Positions 4,246 through 62,114 of a stretch of 64,000 bases of DNA are shown piece by piece; the stretch's first letter is position 1; every line of letters begins with the position of its first letter. The notes beneath the pieces are model-generated. The model was not told the origin of the DNA, searched no databases, and saw only the letters and a program-made list of their open reading frames with translations. This DNA is from Marsupella aquatica (Eukaryota; Plantae; Marchantiophyta). Made by a program: the position numbers and the translations under genes. The stretch spans positions 7,443,241-7,507,240 of the forward strand of contig OZ316899.1 of the NCBI GenBank assembly GCA_973895155.1. Direction: 5' to 3'.

Positions 4246-4376
4246 GTGAGTTTCCTTCTTATTGCAAAACCATTTTGCTTAACTTTAACTATCACAAGGT
4301 TGGAGTACTTTGCCTTCAATCATGAATGCTCAAGTTTGTTGGCATGCTAAGATTTTCTTGCTTACATGTGGAATAG

Positions 4377-5173: not shown

Positions 5174-5286
5174 CGATATGACATATTCGTAATTTATGGA
5201 CCCATTGTTGCATAATACATTGTTGCGTCGTTTATTCGTTTGATTATATATGACTTTGTATCAAATATTGGATTTCACAATTGTAG

Positions 5287-7760: not shown

Positions 7761-7764
7761 GTGC

Positions 7765-10700: not shown

Positions 10701-12149
10701 GAGCCGACAACCAAACGGAGCGGCTGAAGAAACAGGCCGCAATATTTAAGTGCTTGGCTTCCTCAGGTTCAACTCCAATTGGGGCAACCAAGTTACCAGG
10801 AGTAGTACTGGCCGAAGGACAAGCCGAGACACTCACACCGGTGCCGGAGGTAAGTGGCAAGGGGAAGGGGCCAGCTGCCAAACCAAAGAAGAAGAAGAAG
10901 CGGAAACCTTCTGGGTCAGGGAGTAATACAGCTCCTCAAGCCGTCGTGACCAAGGAGGTAAACCTAGCACCAACCTCAGGCAGGGTCACGGCAGAGGATC
11001 CAACTGCCCTAGAAGGCGGGGATGGCAAAGCCGAGGCCAGGATACTCGGTGATAAAGCCGGGGTACCGGATCCACCACTAGAACATATTGGGAAGGCTGT
11101 GGCCGATGCTGAGGCCAAAGCTGGGGGTGGACCTAGTCAGGCCGATGGAGAGTTGACTCGGTCTGCAGCAGGTAATCTGTCAGAGGACGGACCTACGGTA
11201 GTGGCTGCGGAGGAAGTGTTGGGGGCGTCCATTGAGGACCAGACACCGCTGCCATGACGGTGGTGGAGGGCCGCTCCTTTTAAGGAGGACGGACATGGAG
11301 GGAGGAGGTGTGAATGGGCAGGGCGGGCTCAGATCTCCAAGTTTAGAATTAGGATCATGACCAAGGGGTGGCCCTGACACTTAGCTTAGTGGGATTGCGG
11401 ATCCACTGGTAAGAGCAACACTTGTGCTCCTGCCTTGCTATACATAGATAGATTAGGCTTACGCTGCAAGGAATTAGGCGGATCCACTACCAGGATAAGT
11501 ACCTGGGCAGCGGGAAGTTCAGGGCCTTCTTCCTTAGCAAGTTTTTAGTGCACCAGCAGGGCTGGGATCAAGTAGTTAAAGAAGCTCTCGGTTAGTTATA
11601 CTATGACCCTTGTGTATATTCATGTTTCCTCATACCTAAGAGATGAATAGAGTTGGCCTCACGGGCTTAGTTTGCAGATCTTGTATATGAGAAGTACTGT
11701 TTGTATGGCAAGTGCATGGTATAACTCAGTCAGAAGGAGTCATTTTGCTATTTGTGTGTCGCATTAACTTGTTTGAAGATTGCCCACATCAACCAAGAAG
11801 GGAGTAAGCAAGGTAGTAAGAGTTGGATGTGTCGAGCTGAGAGAGGTCTTAGCGGCTTACCCAAGCCAGTTGGGGATCATTCTGGCGGCGGAATCCAAAC
11901 ATACTTGAAGGGAAACCGAGAGAGGAGGACAAGGGAAGGCCTAGAATAGGTCGGTTACGTATCTCATGACCCAATGAAGGATCTGTCCAGTATACGTGAG
12001 TAAAATGTTAATAGTAATAGTAGTAGAAGGAGGTTAGTAGCGTCCCATGCTGCTAAGCTGCGAAATTGGCCTCGCTAAGAGCGAAACCTGCGGGAATCGG
12101 CTTGTGCAGAAGGGTTTCTTGGGTCTAGGGAGCCATTGGACGCACCACA
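7765..12149 (+). mobile_element. Gypsy long LTR, family A (5'-truncated solo or 3' LTR) containing a degenerate ORF
   Basis: Colinear with 57615-62110; ends at the same GGACGCACCACA but is not followed by a PBS. Confidence 0.85.
7850..11257 (+). pseudogene. LTR-embedded ORF: PMD/plant-transposon-protein-like domain plus long coiled coil (~1130 aa, several stops)
   Basis: ORF pieces 7757-8836, 8909-9310, 9383-9679, 9812-10432, 10445-10654 and 10754-11257 share one frame; motif LLEFVGSW...RVYGKDFYLTPRVIAEVFGLP; heptad-rich C-terminal half. Confidence 0.75.
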
Positions 12150-12270
12150 ATTTATTGCTGCACATAGACCAAATAGAGATACACTATAGCTCTACCATCC
12201 TTTCTACTGCAAATGTAGCCTACATGAGTCATGGTCATCCCTCTACAACCTCCCTCCAGACTGATGTTGA

Positions 12271-12852
12271 TTAAGGAGTCCCTTCTCCAGACCAGTAGTA
12301 CTCCTCGTCCGCTTTCCTCTTGTTGTACGAAGCACGCCTTTGGCTGGCATTCCAATTCTTCCGGACAACAGCTTCATCGGCCTGTAGCCTCTGAGCCTCC
12401 ACCTCGGCTGCACAACTTTCCTTGTAATCAAACATAGCAATCTGAAGTTCAGTGGGTGACAGCTCACATTTAGACAAGGTGGGAGGGTAGGCCTCACCAT
12501 CATCATCCTCGGGCGAATCTTCCAGACCACGATCACTGCTCGGATGTAACAAGAACTCTCCTGGGTCCAGCTGCTTGTTGGCAAGAATGGAGCACTCTAC
12601 CCACCGAGTAGAGATGAAATGCAAGGTTTCAGCGAAATGCTCGATCAAGCCAGCATAGTCACTGAAGTGCTCCGCAACCTGTTTCCACGTATTTGCAATC
12701 AAGAAATTGGTCTGTGAGGTACATAGCTTGTCAACAAGCCCTTCACAGCAAAAGAACCCTCGAACCATCTTCTCCTCCTCACCAAGTGGGAGGAAACAAC
12801 AATGCACATTTGCAAAGAACTTCCGCACCATAGCTGAACACTTTGCCTCCAC
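12271..12852 (-). CDS. Hypothetical protein (193-aa ORF), probably another exon carried by the CACTA element
   Basis: Open frame with protein-like composition next to an ACGT-motif cluster like the CACTA introns; no recognised domain. Confidence 0.35.
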   Translation of the reverse strand: MEAKCSAMVRKFFANVHCCFLPLGEEEKMVRGFFCCEGLVDKLCTSQTNFLIANTWKQVAEHFSDYAGLIEHFAETLHFISTRWVECSILANKQLDPGEFLLHPSSDRGLEDSPEDDDGEAYPPTLSKCELSPTELQIAMFDYKESCAAEVEAQRLQADEAVVRKNWNASQRRASYNKRKADEEYYWSGEGTP

Positions 12853-14488
12853 GGTTCAACTTCTCTACACTGAGGACCTTTGATGTCTTCACTCGGGAAT
12901 GCTGGCTATAGTGAGCCTCCCGCCTATAGTTGAGTCTGTCCAACGCTGATATGTGGAATTAACGCCATTTTTCCTGATGTACGTATGGTATTCTATGATG
13001 ACGTATCTGCAGATACGTTGTTCCAAATGCCTAAACTTATGGACGTCGTCCTATACATCGTTCTAATTTACGTCTTTAGGAAATAGTTAAGTTACCTTGT
13101 CGTGGAAGACGTAATGAGAGGTACAACGTATGATACGAGGTAACTTACCGTGTCTTAAAGGACGTAAACTTAACGTCACGACAATCGACGTTATCTGATC
13201 CCGTCAAATCTCCGGACAACATCCAACAACAGTCCGGAGATTAACGACGTATAGACCAACTTTAATGGAAGGAACGTCTTCTTGGGTTAGGTTCAACCTG
13301 GTCCCGAAATGCAAAAATGTAGTTGTGATCCTTCTACCAAGTGACAACTTGTCCTTTTAGAATGTCAATCTGCACCCAAAGCCAAGTAATCTCCACCTCC
13401 TTCCGACTCTGGCTTGTGCGGCTAAGGCCGCCTTGGCTTCAGCCTTAGTGATCTAGGCCAAAGTGGTTGTGAGCTGGGGCCAAAGAAGCTGAAGCTCGGT
13501 CTCTCAATCCGAGGCTTCGTTTAAAAGTTGGGTTGCCTCAACCCAATATTGGTCAATCCTCCTCATGGCTTTGGGTTGTGCTTGTCCTGCCCATACTGCC
13601 GCAACCAGTTCTTGGCTAAAGAAGTACGCCACCTTTCAGGCCATAAACAACCCAACGTCTTGACCAACTTTTGCGGAGAAGTTGTCAAGCAACCCATTCA
13701 TAAATGTACCTAGAGCAAAGTATTTTGGGTTCATTAGGTTGTGGCCGCTGGCTCATGGGCACTACCCTCCTTCTATTTGGGTGGGGGCGGGGGGTGGACA
13801 AATACAGCTTTGGAGTGACAAAGACCGGTGTGGTGGATCCGCAAAGGATGGGGGTTTTGCTGATGCTGCCGTGGGGGATGTAAGGGCTTCCTTGGCAGGG
13901 GCTACCGGCTTGGGATCAGCTTCAATAGGGTCGATCGCAACGGTGGCTCAAGCTTGGTTCTGTGAGTCCAAGGTCGCGATGACTGCTATGTCCGGTATGG
14001 AAGGAGGGGATTTGTTGGTTGGTTGCAGGGTCGAGGTAGGGGCAGAAGTCACGGGTGCTAGGCTTTGGGCCTCAGGTTGGGGCCATCTCTCTTGAGCCGA
14101 AAAGACCCACCTGGCCGGGGTGAGTTTGGGCTCATTGCACCAAGGAAGGGTTTGGCGATCAAAATGGGCGTACCACTCTATGATAATCTCTATGTGGCCT
14201 CCAAGGTATGCCTTTTCCCCAAGGTACAAGGTCTTCCTTTGTTGTTCCATCTCCTCCTGGAACTTCTTGACAAAGAAAGAAGCCCACTTCCTAGGCCGGT
14301 AGTTCTTGACCTGAATAACCTAGGAGACGAATATCTCTCTCCTTATCTCCATCATGTGGAGCGCATACCTTTGGAACTCCAACCGCTCCGCTATCTCTGG
14401 GATGAGGCATGCCGCACAAGGAAGTCGTTCTCCATTGATCAGCCTATTCATTAAAAGTGTATTTTCTTTTGTTCACAAATCAGTCTTG

Positions 14489-14568
14489 AAATGTACACTT
14501 TCATGTCCCCAAATGTACACTTTAAGAAACCCAAATGTACACTTTTTGGTCTCTAAATGTACACTTTA
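14489..14568 (+). repeat. Left subterminal AAATGTACACTTT repeats (4 copies)
   Basis: Read directly; ~21-23-bp spacing. Confidence 0.9.
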
Positions 14569-14842
14569 TAGGTCAAATCATATAAGTATTATATTAATAA
14601 ATAATACATATTATATCATTTATTGATTCACAAAGAATAATAGGATAGAGATCATTATTTATGAATTCACAAAGAATAGTAGGATAGAGATCATACTTAT
14701 AAAAACATTTCAGCACAAATAAACCCTTGAATATGTGTGAACAAAATGACATAACTCCAAATAGATTATAAAATAATATACAATTATCTCCAAATTTACA
14801 ATGTATTTCTTCTATCTAAGGGGCTTAACATGAGTCATATCT

Positions 14843-15976
14843 CTAAACAAAGTGCTCCTTACAATGTGTATTTGAGCACGTGCCCCTATCTCCTTTACTA
14901 TCTACCCTAGTGTCACGGTTGCAAGTCCCTTTATCTTCAGGGAGCTGAAACTTGGTGGTGTTGTTCCTAATGGCTATAATCTCCCGCAAAAAGTGTCGGG
15001 GATTTTCTCTATGCGGACCTGAATAGTCCCTTCCTACAAATGCTTTAGCAAGTGACGTGACAAGTGCATCGTCAAGTTCTGCCTCAGGACGTAAACTACA
15101 TATACGATGCTTCACGTTCCAAGGAATCTCATTGCTATTGAGGTCCAACACACTATGCGTAAACTGTGACTTCCAAATTTTTGTTGCACATCTCTTACTA
15201 AGTTGATCATAAGTAATTTCATTTTTTACCTTGTCTCTCTTTATGTGCAATAGAGACCACAATGGAGAGTTAAGAAGAAGATAACATCTAATGTCACTTG
15301 CATGGGATAGTTTCTCAAGACAAGGCCAAAGAATTGTTAGAAGAAAATTATCTCCACCATTGGCATGCGTGTAGGGCACTGGAAATAGTCCGGTCATGCT
15401 TGGGTTGGCAAATGCCTTAAGGGGGGAGTCATCCACAAGGAGGGTGTTGGTTTCATCATATAGATTTCCAAATCCACTCCATACCACCCAAAAATCCTTC
15501 AGTAGCACATTTGCCTTTCCGTTTGTAATGTCACGCCTTTGAATGCCTGTGTCAAAGGCTTCCACTTGTGTGAATACAAACTTAAGTTTCAACCGCTCCT
15601 CAGCAGTGAACATCATGTTCAGCATTTTCACTGTTCGCTGTACCCCAGCACATGTCCAAATTGCAACGTCAAATCGGTCAAAAACCAACTTTAGAAACTC
15701 ATGGAGCCCTAGCCTTTCTGTGTACATGCGACTAATTCCATTTTTTCTATCCCAATGCACTCCACTTGGGATCACAACATTTCTGGATTTGCCCTTGCTT
15801 TGGAATTCAACTGAATCCCAAAGTATTTTGTTAAGATCCAAAATCAGCAATTTGCGCTTGATGGAACAAGGTCTTGGTTCTGCAAGTGCAACAAATACCA
15901 ATCTTAGAGATAAAACCACATTTGAAGTTTGGATAGAGATCATCTCTGTCAATCCAACACAAGTGGCCAACCACAA
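14843..15976 (-). CDS. FCP1-homology / NIF (HAD-fold) phosphatase-like protein, transposon cargo
   Basis: KLLILDLNKIL, ERLGLHEFLKLVFDRFDVAIWT, LKDFWVVW, NTLLVDDSPLKAFANP. The true start is probably spliced (candidate acceptor ~15880). Confidence 0.85.
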   Translation of the reverse strand: MWLATCVGLTEMISIQTSNVVLSLRLVFVALAEPRPCSIKRKLLILDLNKILWDSVEFQSKGKSRNVVIPSGVHWDRKNGISRMYTERLGLHEFLKLVFDRFDVAIWTCAGVQRTVKMLNMMFTAEERLKLKFVFTQVEAFDTGIQRRDITNGKANVLLKDFWVVWSGFGNLYDETNTLLVDDSPLKAFANPSMTGLFPVPYTHANGGDNFLLTILWPCLEKLSHASDIRCYLLLNSPLWSLLHIKRDKVKNEITYDQLSKRCATKIWKSQFTHSVLDLNSNEIPWNVKHRICSLRPEAELDDALVTSLAKAFVGRDYSGPHRENPRHFLREIIAIRNNTTKFQLPEDKGTCNRDTRVDSKGDRGTCSNTHCKEHFV

Positions 15977-16131
15977 AGAAAATATATCTGCATACTGATC
16001 AGATTCATTGAGAAACCGTAAAGAGGAGATGGATATTGATAATGATGCTCTAATTGTTAAACTTGAAGTATAATTATACAGACTATATTATATCAAATTG
16101 ATAAGGTCACATCGCTCAATCTAGACCTTGG

Positions 16132-19100
16132 CTAACAATGCGATCCATATTCATCAATCAAGATATCATCACAGAGTTCTTGTTGGATCTCATAATTGAC
16201 ATCGGAGGTACTCTCCTCTACCCAATAAGGTGTAGACCAAACCGGAGTTATCAATCCCAATTCTCCACTTCTATAAGTTGGATCTTTCTTGTGCTTTTTG
16301 TACGAGTCATTGTTCAAAATTGATTGAGCAGCATCCAATGCAACTTCAGTTCCTACATCGGGTCCACTTTTCCACACGTAACATCGACAATCATATTCAA
16401 GTGACTTATATCCAGTTGATCCTACTCTCTTCCCTTTCTTTTTTGAGAGTGGAAGGATAACGGGACTTCTTGATTGTGATCGAACAAACACCAATTTGTC
16501 ATCAGAAGCGGAAAAGAGTGTATTGGGACAAATTGAAGCACCTGCCTGGTTGTCAGCAGTCGTGGATGCACTTGCTTCATTCACGGGAATGTCAGCTATT
16601 TGGATGGGTTGTGGTCTCAATCCCAATGTGCCAAGTTCATTGGACTCACCATGCCTCTCCGCACCTTGATTGAGAAGGTTGTTTGAAGAAAGTTTTTCAA
16701 AAGTATCAACTTCCATCTCTTGTCCAGGCACTTGTGGATGGAGACCATCTCTATCCAAGTTATCATCATATTGGCCCTCGTTGGGGCCCATGGGGGCAGC
16801 ATCTGTAATTGGTGAACTGCAAGGTGCAGATCCAACAATCATATCGTCTTCCACAAGGTCAATATTTTCACCCTCGCCAACTCGGTCATCCAAATTTTTC
16901 ACGTATGCCTCTGATGGCCCATCGTCTTTGACTGATTGGTCAGCTTCATCTTCTTGATCACCATCTGATTCATCCTCAATAGCAACAGCGGCAGAAGAGG
17001 GTTCCCAATGTCTAGAACTTCCATCGACATAGCGATCATAACGATCTTTGATGGTGGGAACCTTCTCACAAAGGAACGAAGCGTATGTTTCCACAAAATG
17101 TCTCTCATGTTGAGAGTCACAATAAACAAAACATTCACGTTGAGAAAAAAGGGATGCCTTCATCACTTGACCGCCAGAGAGAAAGTCAAGAATCAAATCC
17201 CCCGGCTCGGACAGTGTTTGGATGATCTTTTGGATCATCCGTGTGGGTTTGGCGTGAGGATTCACCCACCCACCCCGAGCGCCGACAGTCTCAAATTGAG
17301 GTGCCATGTGCAGAAGGATTGCCGCCTCTTCTGGGGTCATCATATTTTTTAGATCTTCATGCAATGACTCCTCGTCCGCGTCCTTGGCCTTTCCCTTTCC
17401 CTTGACCTTCTCAACCACGAAATCAGTATCCTTTTCACCGTACACCCATTTTGGCTTCATTTGGTTGGGCTTGAACACTTCATCCCAGCTGACGTTCTCC
17501 TCGCAAAAAATTCCGGCAAAGATAACTTCTTCTATTCCTCCCTTCCAACATGAGTCCTGAGGGTGAGGTTGATCATCTCGGTAATAACTCCCATACTCAA
17601 TGTGAATACTCAGAGTTTTTGAATGTCCTAATTTACGAAGAGCGCTTAGGACATTCAGTACAAGATAACCCGGATGGACAGTTATCATCACAACAATGGT
17701 AGGATTCCGTGGTAGCTCTACTATATATTGGAAGAGGACCAAAATCTCTACTTCAGTCCACTCCTTTTGCTGAAGTTGGCTGAAATCAACAATTGCAAGA
17801 GGGCATGTTGGAGATTGTTCTTCCAACGACTCCGGATCCACAGTCTTCATTAGGTTGTTACTAAAAAATGAGACCAACGGTTGGGTCCGAGAACTTGTCC
17901 CACCGCCAAACTTTTGACAGTAAATATCATCTAGACGCATCACCAATGTCATTGGCAATATCTCACTCTCCTTTGTATGATTTGACTTCAACAAATTTGT
18001 CAACCATACATCGCCAGTTGCTCTTCGGCACCTGTTCAACTCCGAATCGGGACCCAATAATGGGAGGACTTCAATCACTTTAGCCCAATCAGTATCTGCT
18101 GGGAAGTGTTTTGGATCCTTCTTGAAGTAGTAATCTCCAATAAGAGACTTCAATTTGATCAATATCTTCACCTCCTTTGCAAACTCCTCCATCGCTGGAA
18201 CATCTGACTTATTAGTTGGATCTTTCTTCAAGAAAATCTGACCCGACTTCACCTTGTTCAAAATTCTGGTCAAATCTCTATTTGAGATTTCACCATCAAA
18301 ACAACGAAACATGGCAACGGTTATTGCCTTTTCGGACCTTTTGTTTCCCTGTGTACCAGCCCCATCAGGAAGTTTTCCATCAATCCACATCTGGCACACT
18401 AACCGCCATAACTCGAAAAGATCATTCTCGGCAAAAAGTAACCAGTATACATTTTTCAAGTCTTTTCTCCCCATGGTCATCCTTGCCAATGCCAGATAAT
18501 CCTACAGTCAAAAATTAGGGAGAATGTTGTAAGTTATCTACAATCAATGAGCAACACACAATCGCTTGCTTGGACAGAGACCATCTCCGTCCAAGCCATA
18601 ACCAAAAGTAGAATGAAGTAAAATCTACAGAATGGAAGGTCTCACTCTTGGACAGAGACCATCTCCATCCAAGTCATAACCAAAAACATATTGAACTAAA
18701 ATCAATGTAACGGACGGTCACACTCTTGGACAGAGACCATCTCTGTCCAAACAAGAAAATGTTTCTCACCTGAAATTTTTGACTCTCTTGGGCGTTTGAT
18801 TTGTTGTCCCCGTGCTTTGGCTTTCTTGGTCTTCCAGTTTCAAGGAATTGTTTTCTTGCATGAACAATTGTATCTTTGAAGCACGATTGAAACACCATCG
18901 AAGAATTGATGGCATTTGATCTCATTGAGTGCTCAACTAGTATAGCCGATGGCGTAAGGTCTGACAATAATCTAGCCTTCCTATATTTTAACTTTTTTGC
19001 CAAAACTGTGAGCTTGGCATCAGTTTCGGCCCACTCAAGAACCCATTTGGCCGCCCTAGCAGAATGTTGCCCACTGACGGCAAGGAAAACAATCTCGCCT

Positions 19101-21019
19101 TTCTTCACTCCTGCAAGAAGGTCTTTGCGGTCGTTCTCCGTGTTGTCAAAATGAAGCAGCTTTCTAAGTTTCGGATTGTAAGGAAGAAGGTCCGCAACGT
19201 GAGGTTCATGTCCAAGGTTTTTCACCATGGATTCGGCTATGTGCTTCACATGGGCACTGTTGAGCATCCTGTAACATAACCTTGCCGGAGCTGGATAAAT
19301 TTTCTCCACTGGAATAGAAAATATTTCATTTATCCCAAAAGTATAGTAGTGCTCTATTCTTTGGAGAAAATCATTCCCTTCTAAGACCTTCTTCTCCTCC
19401 GGGGCATCAAGTTTGTCTCCCTCATCCTCTGGGAGCATCTGTACGTCCGTCGGAGTTGACCGCGCAATAGTCTTGTCAATTTTCTGTTTCTTCTTTACTG
19501 GCTTCTTCTCGGGTTCCTTCGGCAGTGTCTCAGTTTTCTTGTGCTCCTTCTTCTCTCTTTGTCTTCGCTTCCCTACCACTTGTTTGGAGGCTGTCCCGGC
19601 CGTTGTTCCTGCAGTCCCGGTTGTTGTCTCCTGAGATATTTTTCTAGGCTTCGGAACTTCTTTGTTAACAACTACTGGAGGCTTGTTCACCACTACTGGT
19701 GCAACATTTGTAGGCTTGTTCACCACTACTGGTGCAACACTTGTAGGCTTGGGTAATGATTCTACCCACTTTTTTGCATTATCCATTGCAAACTCCTCCG
19801 CAAATGCAATTTTCTTGTCAAGGAAAATACTTGATTCCGATGATAGGAATCCTGCCTTGTCAAGCAAATTATTTAAAATCCATGTCACCGGAAATGTATA
19901 ATTCCCTTGGTGTTTATGCATATTAAGCTTCACATATTGAAACCCATACATGATGTCAAGTGGAAGAATCCCCTTCACTCCAGCAGTCACCTTTTGAGTT
20001 GAATACGACTTAGGGAAAAAGCCCATTGCCAACATGCCAAGTTCTCCAACTGCAGACCACTCAACATTGAATTATGAAGAATACGCCTTTGATGGTAGAT
20101 GTAGTTTAACCCATTGTATCCTTTCATGGAGCTCAAGAATGACGGAAACAAACCCTCTTCCTTCAATTCCAATGAAGACTACAGGTCCGAGTACAAGAGT
20201 CTCATGATCTGCAGTTCTGACCTTTATGCACAAAATGGGATCCCGTCTCGTTGACGTGCTAAGGAAATCAAAATCAACTCTGGAGAACTCAAGGCCCCAA
20301 CGAAAATCTTCTCTGCTCTGCTCCAACAAGACTCCCTCGGAGCAATCTGCGTCTGAAATCTGTGGTTTCAATGCATTTAGATAGCTCCCTGCAATAGTCC
20401 CATCCAGGCATATTAGTTTGGAAATCTTACTTTTGTAATTGACAAAAATTGGACAGGGATCATCTCTATCCTCTATTTGGACAGGGATCATCTCTGTCCA
20501 ATTTGTAATAAAGATCATCTCTGTTTGATGAGAGGATACTGACGATCGTTATTACGAATTGGACAGGGATCATCTCTGTCCAATTTGTAATAAAGATCAT
20601 CTCTGTTCGATGAGAGGATACTGACGATTGTTATTATGAATTGGACAGGGATCATCTCTATCCAATTCCTAATAAAGGTCCTCAGCATCGTCTGATAGGA
20701 CATCCTCTGTCGTCAGTTGGAAATAAATGATATCTATGCAATTGGACAGGGATGATCTCCATCCATTTGGATAGAGATCATCTCTGTCCAATTCCTAATA
20801 AAGATGACTATCTTCTATTTGGACTCTACTTGGACAGGGATCATCTTTGTCCACCACACAAATATTCAACTTGTTACTGGGATACTCACTTGGATTGAGC
20901 GATTGAAAGGCTCTAGAATCCTCGAGGGCCGTCTCTACCACGTCCTCAATGGATGGGAGGTCTGTCTCCTCTGTTGGCTCACTGACGAGACACACTGGAA
21001 TAGGTCTGGATGGCTCCAT
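16132..21019 (-). CDS. Predicted 3-exon ~1400-aa protein: ParB/Srx-like domain plus beta-class N6/N4 DNA methyltransferase-like domain (one in-frame TAA at 20072-20074)
   Basis: Exons 21019-20890 (tentative), 20472-18770 and 18501-16132. The phase-0 intron 18769-18502 (CAG|GTGAGA...TGTAG|GAT) joins the 453-aa and 785-aa ORFs in frame. ParB-like: IPVEKI..R.LNSAHVKHIAESM..FLAVSGQHSARAA. MTase-like: HAKPTRMIQKIIQTLSEPGDLILDFLSGG. Confidence 0.75.
18570..18750. repeat. Three 25-bp imperfect palindromes TTGGACAGAGACCATCTCYRTCCAA at 78-bp period, inside an intron
   Basis: Copies start at 18570, 18648 and 18726. Confidence 0.9.
20449..20855. repeat. Cluster of TTGGACAGGGATCATCTCTGTCCAA palindromes, partly in 82-bp tandem units
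   Basis: Copies start at about 20449, 20477, 20559, 20641, 20742, 20767 and 20830. Confidence 0.9.
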
Positions 21020-21914
21020 CGTGTGACACGTGGCCTTATGGACACGTGGAGGATTGTAGAGCGTTAGATCTAGGGCAATTAACGTGGTGGCTATGGGGAT
21101 AAACTTTAGTGTGGAGGCAAAGCGAAGGAGTGCGGAGGCGTCGGAGCGAAGGAGATTGGAAGCAAATGAGGCGGAGGAGCGAGCGAAGGAGCACAAGAGC
21201 AGGAGTGGAGAAGAGGAGTGGACGGAGGAGGGAGGAGAGCGAGCGAGGAGCGAGGAGGGAATGAAGAATGAGGCCCAAGTGGGACATCCTGCCTCCTTTA
21301 CCCCCCCGAGGCGAGGCAAGGCACACTGAACATGTGGGAGGCCGAGGCGAGTGGAAAACCCTAAATGCACGGCTGCCCTAAAGTGCGCCGCCCGACCTAA
21401 TCCACTCGCCGTTGCTTAAGGCTGATCACGCATCGCCTTATCCATAAGGGCGATCTTCAACAATTGGTATAAGATACTTGGGGTTGTCCGGCTGGTCCTC
21501 ATTTGGTATTTTCATTTCTAGATTTTTGTTTTGTTCCTCAACCAGGTCCGTTCATTACGGAGCCCCATTGAGACACTCTTGTTTTCCAGACAAAACATCT
21601 AGTTTTAATTTCTTCCACACCCCTGAAGCATTTAGTTTACCAGGTTACTGATAACTACCCCTTCAACACAGTATTTTAATCCTTGGTTTGACAACATAAA
21701 CTAAATTGAGTTTTGGGTTCAAGAATCATTTCCATTACAGGTAACTTTAAACCTAATTATAGCATTGTAGCATATTCCATTGATATCCGCAAATTTATGA
21801 ATTACTATATCTAAGTTAAGGTTGAAGTGAAAAAATCCCAGCCCAACTCACGATTGGGATAATCTCAATCCAACCGTTCTTTGCTCAAACATTAAATTAG
21901 TGTGTAGAGTCAAT

Positions 21915-22510
21915 TGTCCGTACAGGGGTCATCCCTGTTTGCTATCTGGATAGGGATCATCTCTATCTGTTGTTTGGATAGGGATGATCCCTGTCCACCG
22001 TAGAGTACTATAGAGGACCATATGAACCGGGATATGAACTATAGCACTTTATTGGATCCTCTACAGTTTGGATCCTTTGGTTGGATAATGATCCGTATTC
22101 ACCGTTTGGATGGGGATGATCCCTGTCCGCCATTTGGATAGGGATGATCCTTGTCCACCGTTTGGATAGGGATGGTCCCTGTCCGCCGTTTTGATAGGGA
22201 TGATCCCTGTCTACCCTTTCAATAGGGATCCGTGTCTGCGGTCGTTCTCCGGATGATCCCTGTCCGCCGTTTGAGGTATTTGCTTGATTGGACCCCAATA
22301 TGAAAAGTTTCCTTGAATCATCCCTGTCAGTTGTTTGGACAGGGAATAGACCCGATCCACCATTTGGATAGGGATCAGGCGTGTCCGCCTTTTGGATAGT
22401 GACAGACACTATCCGCCGTTTAGGCAGGGATGATCCTTGTTTGCCGTTTGGACACTAACAGACCCTATCCGTTGTTTGGACAGGGATCATCCCTATCCGA
22501 CGTCTAAATT
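21915..22510. repeat. Array of ~29-30-bp units built on the same palindrome (TTGGATAGGGATGATCCCTGTCCGCCG)
   Basis: Roughly 15 degenerate copies read directly, upstream of the transposase. Confidence 0.88.
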
Positions 22511-22690
22511 GGGATCAGGGATCTTAGGGCTAGATAGGGATTTTTGGGGGACCTATTATTTTGCTTGATGGGGATAATCCCGATATGCGCACTATCCTTG
22601 GAGAGGGTTGACACCTATGTGCTTCCTAGTTGGGACCATTCTTAACTAATACTTTACATTTAAAATTGTGCAGGTGAATACGTTGTAGGA

Positions 22691-25600
22691 ATGACCAGAA
22701 TATTTTTGAGAGGAGACAATGTGATATTGACAAATGATGGTTACGATGTTGCGAGCGGGACAGTTCAAAAAGTCAACCCGCAAGATAGTGTTCAAAAGAT
22801 ATTGTTGAGAGAGAATCGAATGGGAGTTCTCATTGAGAAAGTTTTTGACCGAACCACAAAACTACCATTTCCGATGCCTCGGGCAGAAAACCTTTTTGAT
22901 GCCATTGATTTTCTTGCGTTATTTGGGATTTGTCTTGCGCATATCTATCAACGACAAAAAATTCTCAAAAATGCATTAGTGTAGGTAGTTGTTCAAATAG
23001 ACCCGAGAGTAATTTGGAGAAAAATCCAATTGTAGAGGAGGACTCATCGACCACTCCGAGGCAAGGGGATGAGGTTGAAATGTTCATCTTTGGGTGTTGT
23101 GTAGCCCTTGGAGTTGTTTTCAATACAAATCCAATGAAAAGATGTCACAACATTTTACTTGGTGAATCACGGATCAGTGTGAGGGTCACTGATGTCATTC
23201 ATGGGAGTAGGGTTTTACCTTACAAACACAGTGGGGCTGAAACAATTGACGAGGCAAAAGACTCATGGGTTCTCTGGGACGTGGCAGATGTCCAAAGTAG
23301 AAAGAGTTTCTCAAAGAAGGATGCGGGTGATGATATCAATATAGAGCGGAGTTTTGTTGTGGAGTCTCCCTCAGCTGAAATTTCTAAAACTAATTGTGAC
23401 TATTTCCAACGGTCAAATTGGATGTCAGAGTTAGTTGAACTATACATCGGTTCAGATCGAACCAATAGGGTTGCCACGGGGACCATCACTGTGCCTCAAG
23501 AAACGGCGGCGGTTGACGATGAAATGCTTGGTGAGGACCATGTAGGGATTGCTGTGAAAGATGTGGTGGAATCACAATACTTTCCCAACTTCCATAGGGG
23601 AGTAATTACTTTGGTTCGGTGGCGAATTGATTCAACAAAACTACTTGCAAATGGGAAATTTTTGTCGGACATTTTGGTTGAAGGTTCAGAGAGGATGGAG
23701 TCGGTGGATAGGGATGATCTCTATCCAAATGTGAATGATAGGGGAATGCTGCGCACAAGGCCATACAATTTCAACAAGAGGACTCATGTAGATCCGATTG
23801 AAAAGAAGAGAAGGCTGTTGGAAACCAAGGTAGTTTCAAAAACAACGGAAGCTTCGATTGATGAAATTAAAAGAGAGAATTGTTGCAAGCAGAAATGTTG
23901 TTTGACTATGCCAAGAGAAGACATAGAAGATATTCGGATAGAATTTCACGGGATGTCCAGTGAGTCAAAAACATCACACATTTTCAACCTCTTCCACTAC
24001 AGAGAAGATGATGTTCGTGATAAGGGGCACCATGTTCTCAAGGGTATGGTCGTATGTAGACATGCATTTGCAATCATCCATGGCTTTAGCCACACAAAAT
24101 ATTATGACTACAAAAGGAGGTATGTGGAGGGATGCAAAATTGGGTTCCATGGAAACACGGGCTCCATGAAAACAAGGTCAAATACCTTGCATGCACAAGC
24201 TCTGTTGGAGGATTTTTTGACTCGAAATGCAGAGCCCATGCCTCATATACCTTATGCTGGGGTTCATGGGATAGACTCCACTGAATATCGTCTTCCAGCA
24301 TGTTACAAGAAGCTGGAGATTTTGGAAGATGTGAGAACAAAGATGAAGGAAGAGGGGCTTCCTCCAGTTACAGAGAATACTCTATACAAGATTTGGAGCA
24401 AATCATTCGCAAACTTCAGTTTCCATAAAGATGGTGCATTTGCCAAGTGTACTCTTTGTTGTGAATACAAAGATAGTTTGATGCGAGAAAGAAGGAAAAA
24501 AGAACGTGCTGAAATTGAAGAAAAATGAGCGCAACATCTTCGTGAGCAAATGTCACGTAGATATGTTTACTATGCTCATCGAGTGATGGCTAAGCAACAT
24601 CTAGGGGAATATCTTTGCATCATTCACGACAAGATGGATCAAGCAAAGACGTGGATTCCAAAAATGGTCAGTACTCCTAAATCACTTTCGGGTCATGGGA
24701 TGTCGCTACCTATTGCTCTCACAGGGATGTTGACCCACGGAAGGGATCCAGGAGTCTATGCACACTTTAGTGTCACTGGCCTTTGGCCAGGAGATGCCAA
24801 TTTCACGGTGACATCCTTGGCTAAGTGTCTTCGAGACCTTGAAGAGTACAATGGAGACAAGACAGGTGACATGTTGGATGGCCTTTATTTGGAACCTCAT
24901 AGACCTTTCTTTCAAGCCCTTTTTGACTTTGATGCATTTTTTAAGGGATATTTGGAACCAAAGAGTATTCCAATGAATAGGTATATTGGTTCTGAAGATG
25001 CAGCCGAGAGTCAGACGGAGACGGTCTCCACCCAATATGGTGAGGATCAAGGAGGGGACATGCATGGGGAACAAGGCAGTCCATCTTTCAAGCCCTTGCC
25101 AAGGCACCTAACATTGCAAATGGATAATTAACTCAGCAAATGATAACAAAAACCAGACTGTCATGGCATTTTGTAGTGAGCTTGTGAGTAGAGGAGTATT
25201 TGAAACTGCTCAAATGTCTTTTCTTATGGTTGGTCATACGCACGAAAATGTTGATGTACTCTTTTCGAAGGTATCATATCAAGTTCAGCACAAGGAAGTT
25301 GCAACTCTCCTTGCTCTTATGGCAGAGGTTTGGGAATGTGAGAGCATTCATCCAGTTCCCAGATTGATACAAGAAGTTGCATCTTACAAAGAATATCTTC
25401 AAACTTTCAAAGTTAAAGATATTCAAGGTCACTCAAAATCCGTATCATTTCTTTTCTCTATGAGAGATAATGTACCAATATTTCAGTATAAGTCCCATGT
25501 AAAGCAAGCTTGGGCTCCAGTTGGTGGAAGGTGCATTTGGGCAACAGATCTGACAACAAATTCTCTTCTTTTACCTAGTGGAGAGCCCTTAGCTAAATCC

Positions 25601-26440
25601 ATTGGAGAGATACACAAAAAATCTGAAGAGATTATCCCATTTCTTACCAAGTACCTTGATTTTTTGAGAAGGAGTTGCACTGATGAGACATCTATAGCAT
25701 ATAAGGAAAGATTTCCTCTTGTGAAATATTGGGAGAGAATTGTGGAGTTGTTGACAAATGGGCTTGCACTAGAAGGGGAGGGAAGTACTCAATTTCCCTT
25801 GAAAAACGGATTTTGGCCTAAGACTAACCATGGCACTGGTTACAAGGTCAACCAACCGGATCAAAGTGGTCCTCCAAGTGAAGATGAGGAGAATGCAGAG
25901 ATGACGGCTCTTCAAAATGAGGTCTTGGAAGAGATGGAAGATCAAGCGGCACCATTTGTTGGATCTTGAGCTGAGAGAGAACAAGGACGGTGGATTCCCC
26001 TACAGGATATTTGTCAAGGGAACTTTGTATTTCTTCGACCCGAGGATGACTGGGAGAATAAAAATGGTGGAGGTCATTTCTGGTTGGTGAGAGCTTTGGG
26101 TTTGGTTGACCCTAAGCATGAAGTCCCAACTACATCTCCAACAAACCCTCCTCTGCCTCAACAATATGCTCCAATGTTTCCAGTCGAATGGTGGAGGCCT
26201 AAACACTCTAAACTTGATGTGACTGAGAGTGCACGGTATCTAAACTGCTTCATGTCCACTAAGACATGGGAACGAGATCCAGGGTTTGGTGAGAACGCTC
26301 AACATTGGCAGTATGCAAATTCTGCAATGTATGGTTTTAAATCTAGCATGAAAGAAGAAAACATGGCGGGCAGAGGTTGAAGATTCCTCAAAATGTTCTA
26401 CAAACTGTCCAAAGTTATCTCCAAAGGATGGACAAGTAGA
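22691..26440 (+). pseudogene. Sola-like DDD transposase with three N-terminal Tnp1/En-Spm-like domains; disrupted by 2 TGA stops and frameshifts
   Basis: CCKQKCC, VCRHAFAIIHGFS, LPACY, FAKCTLC, IIHDKMDQAK, LTLQMDN(SANDNKNQTV), SFLMVGHTHENVD. ORFs 22930/24550 and 25163/26084 are pairwise in frame; 4-bp insertion at ~25128. Confidence 0.85.
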
Positions 26441-26684
26441 CTTAGTTGTTACTTGTGAAGTTATAATAATTATTAAATAGATAGTTACTTAGATAGTAAC
26501 AAGTACCTACTAGTTATTTACTATTTTAATAGTTTTAATGTGAGACCATGCCATTGAGTGTTAGTTATACTATCTCCTCATTTTCTAAACTTTTGATCGT
26601 TATGAATATGAATGTTTGCTTTTTTTGCATAATTAAAAATATTTTTCTATTCATTCCTTTCTTTTAAATGATTATAATAAGAGT

Positions 26685-27006
26685 TGGTACACTTTTTAGG
26701 CCAAATGTACACTTTGTTGCACTCAAAGCTACACTTTCTAGACCAAATGCACTTAAATGTACACTTTTTAAGCCAAATGTATGTTTTTTTAACTCAAATG
26801 TACACTTTCTAGGCCAAATGTACTCAAATGTACACTTTTAAAGCCAAATGTACCTATTTTGATGTTCAAATATACACTTTTCATTGCCCAAATGTACACT
26901 CTTTAGGCCAATTGTACACTTTTCTATCCCCAAATGTACACTTTTCATTGGCCAAATGTACACTTTTTCAAGCCCAAAAGTACACTTTTCATTGCCCAAA
27001 TGTACA
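26685..27006 (+). repeat. Right subterminal CCAAATGTACACTTT repeats (~15 copies, ~21-22-bp period)
   Basis: Read directly. Confidence 0.92.
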
Positions 27007-28654
27007 TAAATCAAATAATAATACACTTTTAATGAATAGGCTGATATTGATCCCTTGGGCGGGAAGCTAGAGGACTGCTACTTGGCTCACTTGCCCCCTA
27101 GTGCCCATGATTCTACCCGATTTGGTCCTTCAGGGAGGCCAAAGATGAGCTTAAGCCGTGTCTTGTTCAAGGACATCACTCGTTTGTGAGCACGGATCTG
27201 TTGTCGGGCTTTGTCAAAGTTCTGGATGAACTCAGTCTTGTCTTGCCCATAGTATCTGGAGGTTTCCAAGGGAGAGCGGCGAGGTGCTTGAACCCTTGGG
27301 TTTCAGGTAACCTGCATGCTTTGGGCGGAGAATGTTTTTGTGGACATTCTCCCCCATTCAATGCATGGTTAATTTGGCCATTGTGACAAAGGCCACAGGT
27401 AAGCCTGATACTGAAGTCGGTTCCTTTTGCTTCTTACCTTGGGATCTGGGGTGACTCGTTGAGGTGGGCAACTCCCCGTTTGGTGGTAGCTGGATTGCTA
27501 TCGCCATTAGCACTGGTGTTGGGGCGGCAACTGTTACCGTGTTGTCTACCGGGGCCGCCTCACGGGTTTGGGCTTGCTAAGGTGGTGGTGCATTACCCAT
27601 CCCGAGTCGACGGGTTCCCGGAGGTTTGCGGACAAGTGGTGGAGGAACTTTCTTGTCCTCCGAGCTCAGGTTGACCACGTTCACCACGGATCACACCCAA
27701 GCGGGTGGTGTGATCGGTGGCGGAGAGTGGTTGAAGGGTGCTTGGGGTGGCATCTGCGCTTGTCCTAGCACTGGTGAGTTGGCCGCAGGTGCTGCTGGAG
27801 GAGGTGCCATGGGACCTAGAGTTCCTAATGGGAAGCCAACCAATGCTGAGATTGACAATGGTCCGCCCGGGTTGGGCCTATTACCGAACTGACAGTCAAG
27901 GCAAGCCTGCACCATGACTAGTATGTTGTCAAAGTGATGACGCTGTAAGTCCATTGTGCCAGGGTACTTGGTCCCCTCAAAGAAGAACTCGGAGATCTCA
28001 GCGTCTCGGCAATATTTTCTCTCAAATGGAAGGTTGAGGTCGTTGTTGTAATGAGAGCGCCCGTTCAACTGGATAAGCCATTTGTAATGCCTTTTGGCTT
28101 TGTACTTCCACAGGTTGTGCTCAACAAGTGAGGTTGCAAGATGGTTACCAATTCACAAAAATTGGTACCAAAAGCAAATAGCAGAACTGGACATAACCGT
28201 GACAGACATATGGGGAAGTGTTGAGGGCTGGCTAAATTACTAAGTGCGCAAAGGTGCCGGGCTCAAAGCTTGGGCGAAGAGAGAACTGGTGAACCCCACA
28301 CCTTTTATACCCCTGCCTTGCCTTGATTGATCGGCTCCTCTTGTTCACAATAGGCCGAGCTTGTCACGCTCAAGGCTTACCGATCACTCCTTCCGTCAGG
28401 GTCAGAGCATGGTAGATAGCTACCTCCGGATCAATTATAGGATCCAAGGCAGTCAACCATATCTGGTGGTACATCAGGTGCCGCGCTGCCAGCCCGAGCA
28501 TGAACTCCCATTGTTACTAAAACTATCCTAAGCATCATGATGAGCTAATTTTGTGTCATTATGCTAATAACTATGGATTCCAAAGTCTACGTCATACTTG
28601 CGTAACATGGATTAAACCGTATTACTCACTACCAGCCGTGCTGGCGGCGTCACA

Positions 28655-31600
28655 ACTTTAATATGATAGGATCTTGGGATGACACTTTTGGTAGCACACA
28701 AGTGATCAGAGGTAGAGAGGCAGAATTTTGGCAATTTCTTAAAGTCAGATTTAATTTAGAGGATGCACAAAACATTACAGAGCTTTTTTCAGGAGCAAAG
28801 TTCATTTGGCGCAAAATTAGACTAGAAAATCAAATAGAATCTAGTCTGGACCAATTTTATATTAGCAATAAAGGATGGTGGTTGGGAGAAGTGACTGAAC
28901 TAAAACTTGAAGGGGGGTCAACTCTATCTGACCATGATCCAATCATATGTAAATTCAGTCTCGTAAGACAACAGAGGCAAGAAGCAGATTTAATTTCTTT
29001 AAAGCCAATCTGTATGCTCATAGACAAGCAAGCAATCTGGATGCCCTAGAGGGAGCTTGGACCTAGGGAGTTGATGATGAACTGGACCCTCACATTAGGT
29101 TTATGAAAGCAAGCACTAGATTGAGAGATTGTTACATGGAAATCCAAGCAACCCCTATACAAAAAGATGAGGAGATGTTCTTCTTACGAGAAAAAATGCA
29201 TCAACTTAAGATAGCCATTGTTGAGTCTCACAATGATGCAGACTTGAAAGCATTTTTTGAAGCAGAGGAACAGGTTAAAATTGCTGAGATGGATGAAGCC
29301 CAACAATTGAGACGTTTAGCCAAGCTGAATTGGATTGGTCAAGGTGAAGAACCTTCAAAATTCTATTTTGCCATAGTGAAAGCTAAACGAGCTAGGGAAG
29401 CTATGGACAAGCTGATTTTAGAGGATGGGAGTGTTCTCGCTCTCAAACCCTTGAGAGCTTCTGAAACAAGTTGAAGCTCACGTACTGCAAAGAACTTTAC
29501 TTTCCACCAATTTCTTGCAATGAAGAAGAGAGCCTGGTTTCAGTTGCAAGGAGCAGGCTGCTGAGCAACACTCAACATGCACACTTGCAAGGTGAACTCA
29601 CTATGCTGGAGTCTCTTCCATCACTGAAGGAAATTAAGGAAACTCTCTGGTTACTTCCTAAGGACAAGGCACCTGGTCTGGATGGCATCACTATGAAAGT
29701 TTATAGGGCTTGCTAGGAGTTTTTAAAAGATGAGTTAACTAATATGATACATGATTAGTGGATTACATGGAGGTTGGCGGTTGGGACAAAGGAAGGAATT
29801 TTCAAGTTTATACTTAAGAAACCAGATAAGAGCAGACTTAAAGATTGGACTATGCTCAACACCATATACAAATTGATGGCTAAGATACTAGCTCTTCGAC
29901 TCAAGTTACTGGTGCATAAGTTTATTAGCCCACAACAAACCAGTTTTATTCCTGGCAGATTTATCCTAGAGAACATTTTGTTGGCATGGTTAACCAGAAA
30001 CTAGGTACATTCATGAAAAAGGAAACCCTCTTTCTTAAACTTGATTTTGAGAAAGCCTTCGACAGAGGTAATCACTCTTACATATGGGACACAATGTACG
30101 CTTTAGGAATTAGTGGTCACTTCACCCGACTAGTTAAATCCCTTCTCAACTTAGCTGCATCCAGAGCACATGTCAATGGACTGCTTGCAGATTCCCTTTT
30201 GATCGAGAGAGGGGTGAGACAGGGCTGCCCCCTCTCGCCTCTTCTATTTGTCATTTCCGCCCAACCACTTATGGATCTCATTGATTCAGAGATTAAACGT
30301 GGTAACTTCAGTGGAGTAGATATTGCCCCTGGATTTACTATTTGCTACAGGTTCTTTGCAGATGATATAGGGCTCTTCATCCCGGTGATTGAGGAAGCAT
30401 TCTTGCAAGCGAAGGAAGTGCTTTCTTGTTATGAGATGGCTTTTGGCGCCAACCTCAACTTACAGAAGTCAGTTATCATTCCACTGGCTATGGAAGACAT
30501 TCCTGAGTGGCTGACACATACAGGTTGCATTATCAGTAAACGTGGAGAGGTTCAAGAATATCTTGGTGCTCCTTTTGGTATTGGCTTCTTGCAAAACTCA
30601 TTGCACAGATTCTGTCTAGATAGAATTAGCTCCAAACTTTCATTGTGGACCACTAGATTCCTCTCTTTTACTGGACTAATGCTGCTGGTGAGACACATGT
30701 TGCAGGCCATTCCAATCTACCATATGATGTTCCTGAAATCATCAGCAGACCTGGCCAAGAAAATGGCTGCCCTTTGTCATGACTTTTTGTGGGGATACAA
30801 TATGGAAGGAGGTGGTTGCATTCTGCTGGTGGCTTGGTACAAGATGTCTCAACCAAGCTGGATGGTGGACTGGGATTTTCGAACTCATTTGGATGCTTTA
30901 CTTTGCAAATGGATTTTGTCAACAAATTCAGAATGGGCTAAGATGTATGAAAATAACTTATGGCAGCTACAATGGTGGAACAAACATGCAATGAAAGGAA
31001 TGGATACTTGGCATTGGATCTTATTTTGCTTGGCTCTCCCAAATTGTTTGGTTCCTTCTCCTATACCAGTGGGCTCTGGAAAGCTTGGGAACCCCTGCAA
31101 TGCCCGGGTACGACGGGTATTCCTGGACATTGGTGCATAGTTGATGCTACCCGCTGCATTAATGGATTCATTCCTTAAGTACCCTTGAAGGATTCAGTCA
31201 AAATTGCAGCACTTTGTGGAAGATCAGGGATTAAGAAAGTAGCAGACTGTTGGCACGGATCAGAACATACTCTGAGGGATTTCTATCAGAGGTTAGGCCG
31301 GCTAAGGTAGATCTCATAAACTGTGAAGAGCCTTTGCAGTGTACTAATTGCTCTCATTGTAGCTGCCGGAATGAAAAATGGGAATTGGGTAACAAGTGCG
31401 CGACAATGGTGATGGGAAGACAATGATATGGCGCTGAGTTGATTTAAATTAGGGACCCCCGAACATATCAACTTCTCAGGCTGAAAGGATCTGATGGTAC
31501 TAGATGGAACAAAAACTGGTGCTACTCTAGGTCGGAGTCAGAATGGAATAGGTTTTGGAAGAACTTATGGTCTTTGTATCTACCTACTCGAGCCAAAGTC

Positions 31601-62110: not shown

Positions 62111-62114
62111 TTTT

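Follow-up and report, generated by a model that had tools for sequence, protein, structure and literature searches.

We analysed a stretch of 64,000 nucleotides from the liverwort Marsupella aquatica (GenBank assembly GCA_973895155.1, contig OZ316899.1, positions 7,443,241 to 7,507,240 of the forward strand; hereafter the window, whose numbering is used for all positions) and found that it holds a large DNA transposon at 14438-27045. The element is 12,608 bp long and has a G+C content of 41.9%, versus about 48% in its flanks. As had been predicted from the letters, it is bounded by perfect 26-bp terminal inverted repeats (TIRs): the first 26 bases from 14438 (left TIR, 5'-ATCAGCC..., 14438-14463, plus strand) match, without a single mismatch, the reverse complement of the 26 that end at 27045 (right TIR, 27020-27045, minus strand), and pairing extends beyond these to 34 nt (left arm to 14471; 91% complementary). 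The predicted 4-bp target-site duplication (TSD) is present as well, with ATTG abutting the left TIR (14434-14437) and the same four bases directly after the right TIR (27046-27049). No further copy of the TIR 26-mer was found within the window, where chance would give none. Hence, with perfect TIRs and an intact TSD, the ends of the element look recent.

Inside the TIRs, a motif search of the window revealed the 13-mer AAATGTACACTTT in four copies with 22-bp spacing at the left end (14489-14567, plus strand) and in ten copies, in the same orientation, at the right end (26703-26988, plus strand). These 14 matches, versus 0.08 expected, all fall within about 350 bp of the two ends of the element, and the inner portion of the TIR contains the motif, too. 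The 13-mers are direct (+) at both ends and inverted solely in the TIR, so the ends of the element are structurally asymmetric. The subterminal 13-mers are probable candidates for transposase-binding sites.

The surroundings of the element are retrotransposon sequence: two copies of a repeat of about 4.3 kb, at 7767-12153 and at 57908-62114, are 83-84% identical, and a reverse transcriptase open reading frame (ORF) lies at 29986-31140, roughly 3 kb downstream from where the element is inserted. The original prediction was that the element interrupts a host ORF that rejoins upon its removal. Removing the element and one TSD does extend an ORF from 129 to 171 aa, but the claim is weak: by our estimate, a run of 42 codons without a stop has a chance probability of about 13%, the rejoined ORF has no Pfam match, and there is no empty-site paralogue within the window, where the related repeat copy stops about 390 bp before the equivalent place. 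The insertion appears to lie in retrotransposon-rich DNA, not in a host gene.

On the plus strand, the element carries a gene of about 1,100 codons for a transposase of putative DDD type (23080-26380, with a tentative start ATG at 23080), as anticipated; the gene is broken and was searched as three uninterrupted pieces. Pfam recognises solely DUF7869 (PF25273, E 4e-23). The last piece is 69% identical to a protein of Calypogeia fissa, and many 'DUF7869' proteins of Riccia sorocarpa also match. A protein atlas search with P0001 returned clusters made up solely of DUF7869 proteins from Streptophyta and was uninformative on the superfamily. Three candidate catalytic aspartates lie in the motifs IHD, QMDN, and GHTHENVD. 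Three lesions interrupt the frame: a TGA at 24526-24528, where C. fissa has an Arg codon; a frameshift at about 25129, just after QMDN, where the C. fissa frame continues; and a second TGA at 25967-25969, where C. fissa again has an Arg codon. Hence, given two premature TGA codons and a frameshift, the window copy could move solely with transposase supplied in trans.

We compared this transposase with that of Sola1-1_Ec32 from Ectocarpus, an element of 21.5 kb with a 4-bp TSD, 282-bp imperfect TIRs, and AACCG termini (PMC12477816, Genome Biol 2025), which was classed by its best blastp match to a Repbase Sola1 protein (PMC12477816). The two proteins share, in the same order, a CC..C cluster, FxxCxxC, the first Asp (hhD; MMD in Sola1-1_Ec32 versus IHD in the window), QxDN...NKN, and MVGHTHxxxDxxFS, and in both the second and third Asp are 42 residues apart. 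When we searched the transposable element protein library of that paper, which spans all Ectocarpus families, each of four exact Ectocarpus motif strings occurred once, in part 10 of the library, alongside the Sola1-1 entry. A 4-bp TSD is seen in two independent copies of the family, ATTG in the window and CACG in C. fissa (locus L006). Hence, the motif agreement with Sola1-1_Ec32 and the 4-bp TSD support a Sola1-type cut-and-paste DNA transposon, as the original prediction of a cargo-bearing Sola-type element had it.

The accessory genes, or cargo, are a ParB-like plus methyltransferase-like gene and a NIF/FCP1-like ORF, and we confirmed both on the minus strand, where they had been placed; they share that strand and are divergent only relative to the transposase, and not to one another as had been stated. 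The ParB/methyltransferase-like gene is predicted to have two exons. Exon 1 (18770-20035, ATG at 20035-20033) encodes a Lys/Pro-rich N-terminal part followed by a domain with a ParB/Srx fold; a predicted 268-nt GT-AG intron of phase 0 (18502-18769; read from the sequence, with GT and AG checked) joins ...ESQKFQ to DYLALARMTM...; and exon 2 (16132-18501) encodes a helical region, a beta-class amino-methyltransferase fold (ORF residues about 200-485), and a low-complexity tail. The NIF/FCP1-like (HAD) phosphatase-like gene occupies 14843-15943 (ATG at 15943-15941, TAG at 14845-14843, both checked in the sequence). Together the cargo coding sequence amounts to about 4.7 kb with no stops or frameshifts, so the cargo of this copy is indeed better preserved than its transposase.

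The intron prediction came from the ORFs themselves: the conserved part of the 453-aa ORF ends in ...ESQKFQ and is followed by GTGAGA, and the 785-aa ORF is preceded by ...TGACTGTAG. An annotated C. fissa protein (P0081) has the same junction, SKFQ followed by DWQVLAKITM, and a protein from an ENA assembly contig (P0195, L008) covers the ParB-like and methyltransferase-like parts in a single uninterrupted ORF of 1009 aa. The two exons would yield one predicted protein of about 1,211 aa; we searched and folded them separately, not as a joined spliced protein. The ENA contig itself (271-3300 of 4.5 kb) showed neither an intron nor, anywhere along it, the palindrome arrays described below, and it is either from an intronless lineage or derived from a transcript.

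The cargo recurs in other copies of the family. Using tblastn with the window ORFs, we found a C. fissa locus with the same gene order and orientation, at 37-69% amino acid identity: NIF, methyltransferase-like, and ParB-like ORFs on one strand and the transposase on the opposite strand. This locus (L006) holds a complete element at 615-13660, with TIRs at 615-640 and 13635-13660 and CACG flanking both sides, and thus provides what had been proposed as a check, an independent copy with the same genes and a different 4-bp TSD. Its TIR matches that of the window at 20 of 26 positions, and its own two arms agree at 25 of 26. A metagenome contig (L003) has a related terminus at 6775-6800, at the end of the contig, and a related 22-bp subterminal repeat at 6635-6767. 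The TIRs are conserved within the liverwort family as ATCA...TTCATTAAAAGTG. Together, the TIR and the subterminal 13-mers form a repeat system that is separate from the palindromes described below, conserved between genera, and slowly evolving.

In Riccia, two loci (L002 and L009) carry transposase, ParB-like, and methyltransferase-like ORFs by tblastn; the NIF gene is present in L009, too, and its position in L002 would fall past the end of the locus. We searched L009 for TIRs and found none. In addition, three metagenome contigs (L003-L005) have the ParB ORF, the methyltransferase-like ORF, and NIF in a row. The proposed linkage of these genes in related bryophytes is therefore borne out in C. 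fissa and in Riccia L009. We considered whether the cargo might be a separate element nested in the transposon and rejected this; the cargo lies within the TIRs of the window copy, and its order is retained inside those of C. fissa. The cargo is thus integral to the transposon family.

The family is also abundant in public sequencing runs, four of which yielded thousands of contigs that match window positions 14700-20699 at 90-100% identity. Hence, the family is multi-copy in at least two organisms. Transitions predominate among the differences from the window copy (C>T, T>C, G>A, A>G); these, together with the TGA stops at C. fissa Arg codons, fit deamination-driven decay of a methylated repeat. 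No splice evidence was seen in the public-run contigs, and no run is on record as RNA. The one GT..AG joint seen (16758 to 18756) carries additional letters where its two sides meet and resembles a deletion derivative.

The ParB-like exon was recognised by structure and not by sequence profile. Exon 1 had no match in Pfam (E up to 10), NCBIfam, PHROGs, or PDB sequences. A family profile against PDB retrieved only CFA/I fimbrial fusion chains, which we discarded as spurious, since three tandem repeats, each worth 10-11 bits, inflate the E of 3e-8. The AlphaFold (AF2) model of exon 1 has a predicted local distance difference test score (pLDDT) of 80.1, and its top Foldseek matches are all ParB/Srx proteins (Noc, ParB-CDP, sulfiredoxin, PadC, and KorB; best E 3e-3, probability 0.99). 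Similarly, ranks 1-8 in VIA are all ParB/Srx, with Z from 7.3 to 4.6 over 80-124 aligned residues and with pNOB8 ParB-N, PadC, and KorB at the top (Z 7.3). The models thus give moderate support for a ParB/Srx fold in exon 1. In place of the GxxR (GERRxRA) nucleotide-binding box, the family has SGQHS, which is invariant in 7 of 7 proteins of alignment A6, with both central arginines replaced, and nearly invariant in alignment A5 (G and Q at 90% or more).

Exon 2 alone gave weak but consistent Pfam, PHROGs, and PDB matches to motif X-I of beta-class amino-methyltransferases. A homologue search with the 785-aa ORF returned no matches, probably as low-complexity words filled the candidate list, and we substituted a HMMER search, in which a profile of five family members against 1.84 billion representatives retrieved 196 proteins. 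The named proteins among the 196 are from Riccia, apart from one cluster that contains a fern protein. That protein (P0200; Adiantum nelumboides, MCO5593625.1, 669 aa) belongs to the cluster of P0190; the representative of this cluster matches the pseudo-methyltransferase profile in its helical N-terminal region at E 2.5e-7. The fern member may mean that the family reaches past liverworts, or it may reflect contamination or transfer.

A 25-member profile matches M.RsrI at E 1.3e-8, and among the members themselves 17 match PF01555 (best 6.7e-7), with similarity over motif X-I (HPTQKP...DPFxGSG). The window protein alone is under the PF01555 gathering score (21.6 versus 26.7 bits). The AF2 model of exon 2 has a pLDDT of 80.6 and matches CcrM in Foldseek at E 1.3e-7. 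In VIA, CcrM is found at Z 18.1 (219 residues aligned; root-mean-square deviation 3.3), followed by M.BceJIV at 16.5, M.MboIIA at 16.4, and M.RsrI and M.PvuII at 15.8 each; 20 amino-methyltransferases score Z 9 or higher, and the next entry is at 5.3. On these models, exon 2 is predicted to have a methyltransferase fold with the beta-class motif order, IV before I.

The fold lacks its catalytic motif. The sequence (D/N/S)PP(Y/F/W) is in none of the 25 family members, anywhere in the protein; in the window protein, the predicted beta-4 strand (residues 231-235, LAIVD) leads into FSQ, and the other members have similar residues, none of them Pro, at this place, giving D(F/L)xx. Motif I is a conserved Gly-rich DFFSGG (LDFFSGG). 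The C-terminus of exon 2, which follows the long low-complexity tail, is conserved and has no DPPY-type motif, and in several lineages the conservation of the protein extends as far as the stop codon. Hence, the NIF-like sequence that comes next is, on this conservation, a separate gene. Riccia gene models that fuse the methyltransferase-like and NIF parts (P0062, P0071, and P0166; L009 10001-17052), labelled 'FCP1 homology domain-containing', look like an annotation merge across a gap of about 2.5 kb, and we did not use them as Rosetta-stone evidence.

The NIF-like ORF matches PF03031 at E 7e-13 and 49 bits (cut-off 21.8) over 160 of 160 profile positions. It also matches NCBIfam TIGR02245 (HAD_IIID1) at E 1e-12 and 47.9 bits, far under the whole-protein cut-off of 192.25 bits. 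Its motif I is DLNKI, with DxN in place of DxDxT, and the C. fissa copy, 54% identical, also has LDLNKI. In an alignment of 11 proteins (A1), D47 and N49 are invariant (LDLNK, LDLNG, LDCNG), I, V, L, or T stands in place of the Thr, and the nucleophile Asp and motifs II-IV are retained. At the C-terminus (window 14843-14960), all full-length members of this alignment have the Cys pattern C-x-R-D ... T-C-x-N-x2-C, which may form a small zinc-binding module. Across the three accessory domains, then, the folds and many invariant residues are kept and the canonical catalytic or nucleotide-binding motifs are gone.

A further feature of the element is a set of palindromes, which motif searches placed largely in arrays outside coding sequence. 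Three palindromes (consensus TTGGACAGRGATSATCYCTGTCCAA) lie inside the intron with a 78-bp period (18572-18748), seven lie upstream of the ParB exon (20451-20852), and seven lie in the divergent intergenic region with a 28-bp period (21948-22498); single palindromes occur at 15931-15951, at the start of NIF, and at 23706-23726, in the transposase ORF. The 21-nt core of TTGGACAGRGATSATCYCTGTCCAA has 19 matches in the window, all at 15931-23726, versus none in 100 shuffles.

Other copies have palindromes of their own. In the complete C. fissa element (L006), the palindrome is AGCCTCGATACCGTATCGAGGCT; about 30 copies lie within the element, and its flanks, over 8 kb, hold none. The palindrome of a second C. 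fissa element (L007) is GCCTCGAGAT...ATCTCGAGGC, and that of Riccia is GCTTCGGGAYGCATCCCGAAGC, with GCTTAGCGATGCATCGCTAAGC in addition in L009; L003, L004, and L005 each have their own. In Riccia sorocarpa L009 (882-14348), the palindrome families GCTTCGGGATGCATCCCGAAGC and GCTTAGCGATGCATCGCTAAGC coexist and differ symmetrically at inner half-site positions. Across eight element copies, the palindrome length (22-23 bp), the array organisation, and the non-coding position are conserved and the sequence differs by lineage, with changes between lineages mirrored on both arms. The gap or intron between ParB and methyltransferase holds an array in six of the seven loci that cover this junction. Such palindromes look like parS-type sites, or co-evolving sites of a dimeric DNA-binding protein.

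Taken together, these results very probably describe a liverwort family of Sola1-type elements, 12.6-13 kb in length, in which the transposase is paired divergently with a two-gene accessory module. This identity and anatomy, combined with the reading of the module as pseudoenzymes, is still a probable account. Since the TIR and 13-mers are conserved between genera and the palindromes are fast-evolving, we infer that the TIR system goes with the better-conserved transposase and the palindromes with the faster-evolving ParB-like protein. Under this account, the transposase would recognise the conserved TIR and subterminal 13-mers, and the ParB-like pseudo-methyltransferase would bind the lineage-specific palindromes as a dimer, in a self-recognition like that of parS or KorB operators, acting at the divergent promoter and at the intron of its own gene. 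There it would regulate or shield transcription of the element rather than methylate DNA. The DxN phosphatase-like protein would more likely bind or trap a phosphoprotein, for example, the C-terminal domain (CTD) of RNA polymerase II, than turn it over.

These steps differ in how far we hold them. That the ParB-like protein binds the palindromes is a tentative assignment, which may well prove wrong; that the accessory module serves transcription or anti-silencing is rather doubtful. The scheme as a whole, a plasmid-style self-addressing by a ParB-fold pseudo-methyltransferase and a CTD-phosphatase-like trap with a private lock and key for each Sola1 subfamily, is unlikely to hold in full.

Several points weigh against our account. 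The palindromes could equally well be bound by the transposase. A protein that has lost a canonical motif may still be active. The ParB/Srx match is moderate (Z 7.3, Foldseek E 3e-3), and no sequence profile recognises the domain. Expression and splicing are predictions, and the runs we found consist of contigs of unrecorded kind or of probable DNA. For the assignment to Sola1 we rely on the agreement of motifs with a single published protein and on the TSD, and the termini differ: ATCAG... with a 26-bp TIR here versus AACCG... with a 282-bp TIR in Sola1-1_Ec32.

Of the alternatives, the one that best withstands the evidence is that the palindromes are not ParB-type sites at all and are instead internal transposase sites, sources of hairpins or small RNA, or fast-evolving minisatellites, with the ParB-like protein acting elsewhere. 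One palindrome lies within the transposase ORF (23706), arrays lie upstream of the transposase, and tandem arrays readily expand and contract. However, the 22-23 bp class is kept in eight copies, from three liverworts (named or inferred) and three metagenome contigs, and an array recurs at the ParB/methyltransferase gap or intron in six of the seven loci that span this junction. Lineages differ by changes that appear symmetrically on the two arms, as for the sites of dimeric proteins, and the TIR and 13-mers already form a separate, slow-evolving system that suits the better-conserved transposase. In addition, ParB-domain genes beside inverted-repeat arrays were observed independently in red-algal Plavaka elements. 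We consider this alternative unlikely, and prefer to assign the palindromes, tentatively, to the ParB-like protein.

The original prediction was that the element carries its own DNA- and chromatin-modifying kit, possibly for self-marking or anti-silencing. In an active kit of this sort, ParB-targeted methylation (N6-methyladenine or N4-methylcytosine) would be laid on the element and the phosphatase would act on a chromatin or RNA polymerase II substrate. For such activity speak the intact beta-class fold, with motif I LDFFSGG and the Lys of an HPTQKP-like motif conserved, the presence in the NIF-like protein of a nucleophile Asp and of motifs II-IV, and the description of the Ectocarpus Sola1 accessory protein as a predicted N4-cytosine/N6-adenine methyltransferase. 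Against it, (D/N/S)PP(Y/F/W) is absent from all 25 members, with beta-4 ending in D(F/L)xx; the acidic residue after beta-2, the usual holder of the S-adenosylmethionine ribose, is not conserved; in all 11 proteins, Asn takes the place of the general-acid Asp of DxDxT; SGQHS replaces GxxR; and the window protein, at 21.6 bits, does not reach the Pfam gathering score of 26.7. An active kit is therefore improbable, and that part of the prediction is not borne out in the form given. Because the catalytic or nucleotide-binding motifs are replaced in all three domains, enzymatic self-marking seems less likely than binding, which the pseudoenzyme reading favours.

We also asked whether the transposase could represent a separate DUF7869 superfamily that happens to give 4-bp TSDs. 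In its favour, the comparison with Sola1 is at the level of motifs; the termini and TIR length are unlike those of Sola1-1_Ec32; and the first and second Asp are about 165 residues apart in the window versus about 86 in the Ectocarpus protein. Set against these are the five collinear signature motifs, including QxDN...NKN and MVGHTHxxxDxxFS, with the equal 42-residue spacing, the four motif strings that each occur once in the library beside the Sola1-1 entry, the 4-bp TSD of two independent copies, and the best blastp match to a Repbase Sola1 protein by which the Ectocarpus entry itself was classified. A separate superfamily is quite improbable on this evidence, and we retain the Sola1 assignment. 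Least of all do we credit the accessory genes as decaying passengers captured once (Pack-type) and without function for the element: all three domains lack canonical catalytic motifs and, in one C. fissa copy (L001), every cargo gene is interrupted by several in-frame stops, but this is a very improbable reading of genes that keep their order, their exon junction, and dozens of invariant residues at 25-55% protein identity in two liverwort classes, whose coding sequence of about 4.7 kb is intact in the window copy, and whose replacement motifs DxN, SGQHS, and DFFSGG are themselves invariant, which points to purifying selection on an altered function.

Proteins of the ParB family (the ParB-parS systems, KorB-OB of RK2, and Noc) act at short palindromic sites that occur in several copies on the replicon that encodes them. 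Site specificity differs between related replicons, and KorB represses divergent promoters via such sites. Phages carry ParB-Tls loci (PMC4738411), and ParB-methyltransferase fusions also occur in phages. The liverwort element resembles these bacterial, plasmid, and phage systems in its ParB/Srx fold and in the multiple palindromes on its own replicon, the sites being predicted; it differs in having SGQHS for the GxxR CTP box, no assignable helix-turn-helix, no ParA partner, and a eukaryotic host.

The closest published architecture is that of Sola1-1_Ec32, in which a 1104-aa protein with ParB-like and N6/N4 methyltransferase parts is encoded opposite the transposase, and its authors propose self-binding and modification (PMC12477816). 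Like the liverwort element, it has the collinear transposase motifs listed above, a 4-bp TSD, an unusually large size for a TIR transposon, and a ParB/methyltransferase gene on the opposite strand. The two differ in dimensions (21.5 kb, 282-bp TIRs, and AACCG in Ectocarpus versus 12.6 kb, 26-bp TIRs, and ATCAG in the liverwort) and in the methyltransferase, described as predicted active in Ectocarpus and without the catalytic motif in the liverwort family; neither a phosphatase-like gene nor palindrome arrays are reported in Ectocarpus, and the accessory proteins are likened by description.

A second comparison is offered by the giant Plavaka transposons (CACTA/EnSpm-related) of Bostrychia moritziana, which have the accessory genes PAG2 and PAG3 (bioRxiv 10.1101/2025.02.11.637652). 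There, a ParB plus 2-oxoglutarate (2OG) oxygenase gene lies beside tandem inverted-repeat arrays, read as self-binding sites, and a separate gene combines an N6A-methylase with SET (bioRxiv 10.1101/2025.02.11.637652). A ParB gene next to inverted-repeat arrays and an N6-adenine methylase domain on the element are thus common to both, whereas Plavaka belongs to another transposase superfamily, has its ParB fused to the 2OG oxygenase, and has no NIF-like gene.

Inactive methyltransferases on mobile elements have a precedent in DIRS1 retrotransposons, whose amino-methyltransferase domains are catalytically dead, with catalytic and substrate-binding residues substituted in all copies (Iyer and colleagues, PMC4738411), and have been proposed to act by binding, possibly linked to RNA polymerase II (PMC4738411). 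Unlike the liverwort protein, the DIRS1 domain is of the PCIF1-like clade, forms part of a retrotransposon polyprotein, and lacks an accompanying ParB domain. Compared with the FCP1/SCP/UBLCP1 phosphatases (NIF, HAD-IIID), the transposon protein conserves the NIF profile, the nucleophile Asp, WT(C/S)A, the Lys, and DD(S)P; it differs in having Asn for the second Asp, in not keeping the Thr, in its C-terminal Cys cluster, and in being encoded by a transposon.

In view of Sola1-1_Ec32, published with its ParB-methyltransferase gene (PMC12477816), the architecture is at least partly catalogued already, which had been named as a ground for refutation, and its novelty is not borne out as it had been put. 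What is new is the presence in land-plant hosts, a complete bounded copy with a cross-genus counterpart, and a NIF-like gene with DxN. Also new are the family-wide loss of canonical motifs in three domains and the lineage-specific palindromes over eight copies.

Transposon genes of prokaryotic type for ParB and DNA methyltransferase have been recognised lately in brown, red, and green algae, and our results extend them to land plants. The hosts include leafy and thalloid liverworts, and one distant relative is annotated in a fern. For annotators, there is a caution not to call these proteins active DNA methyltransferases or phosphatases; the Riccia and Calypogeia models at these loci are labelled as hypothetical host proteins, and some fuse the methyltransferase-like and NIF-like genes.

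With a ParB-like protein and its own palindrome in each subfamily, binding is directly testable. If self-addressing is true, it would control or shield transcription of the element or assembly of its transposition complex, with a subfamily specificity comparable to the specificity groups of ParB-parS or KorB-operator systems. The family would then be a eukaryotic analogue, at the level of a transposon, of bacterial partition and incompatibility systems, made wholly of catalytically retired enzymes. More generally, the conservation of retired enzymes suggests that such modules may work by binding, which would alter how cargo of this kind is interpreted elsewhere.

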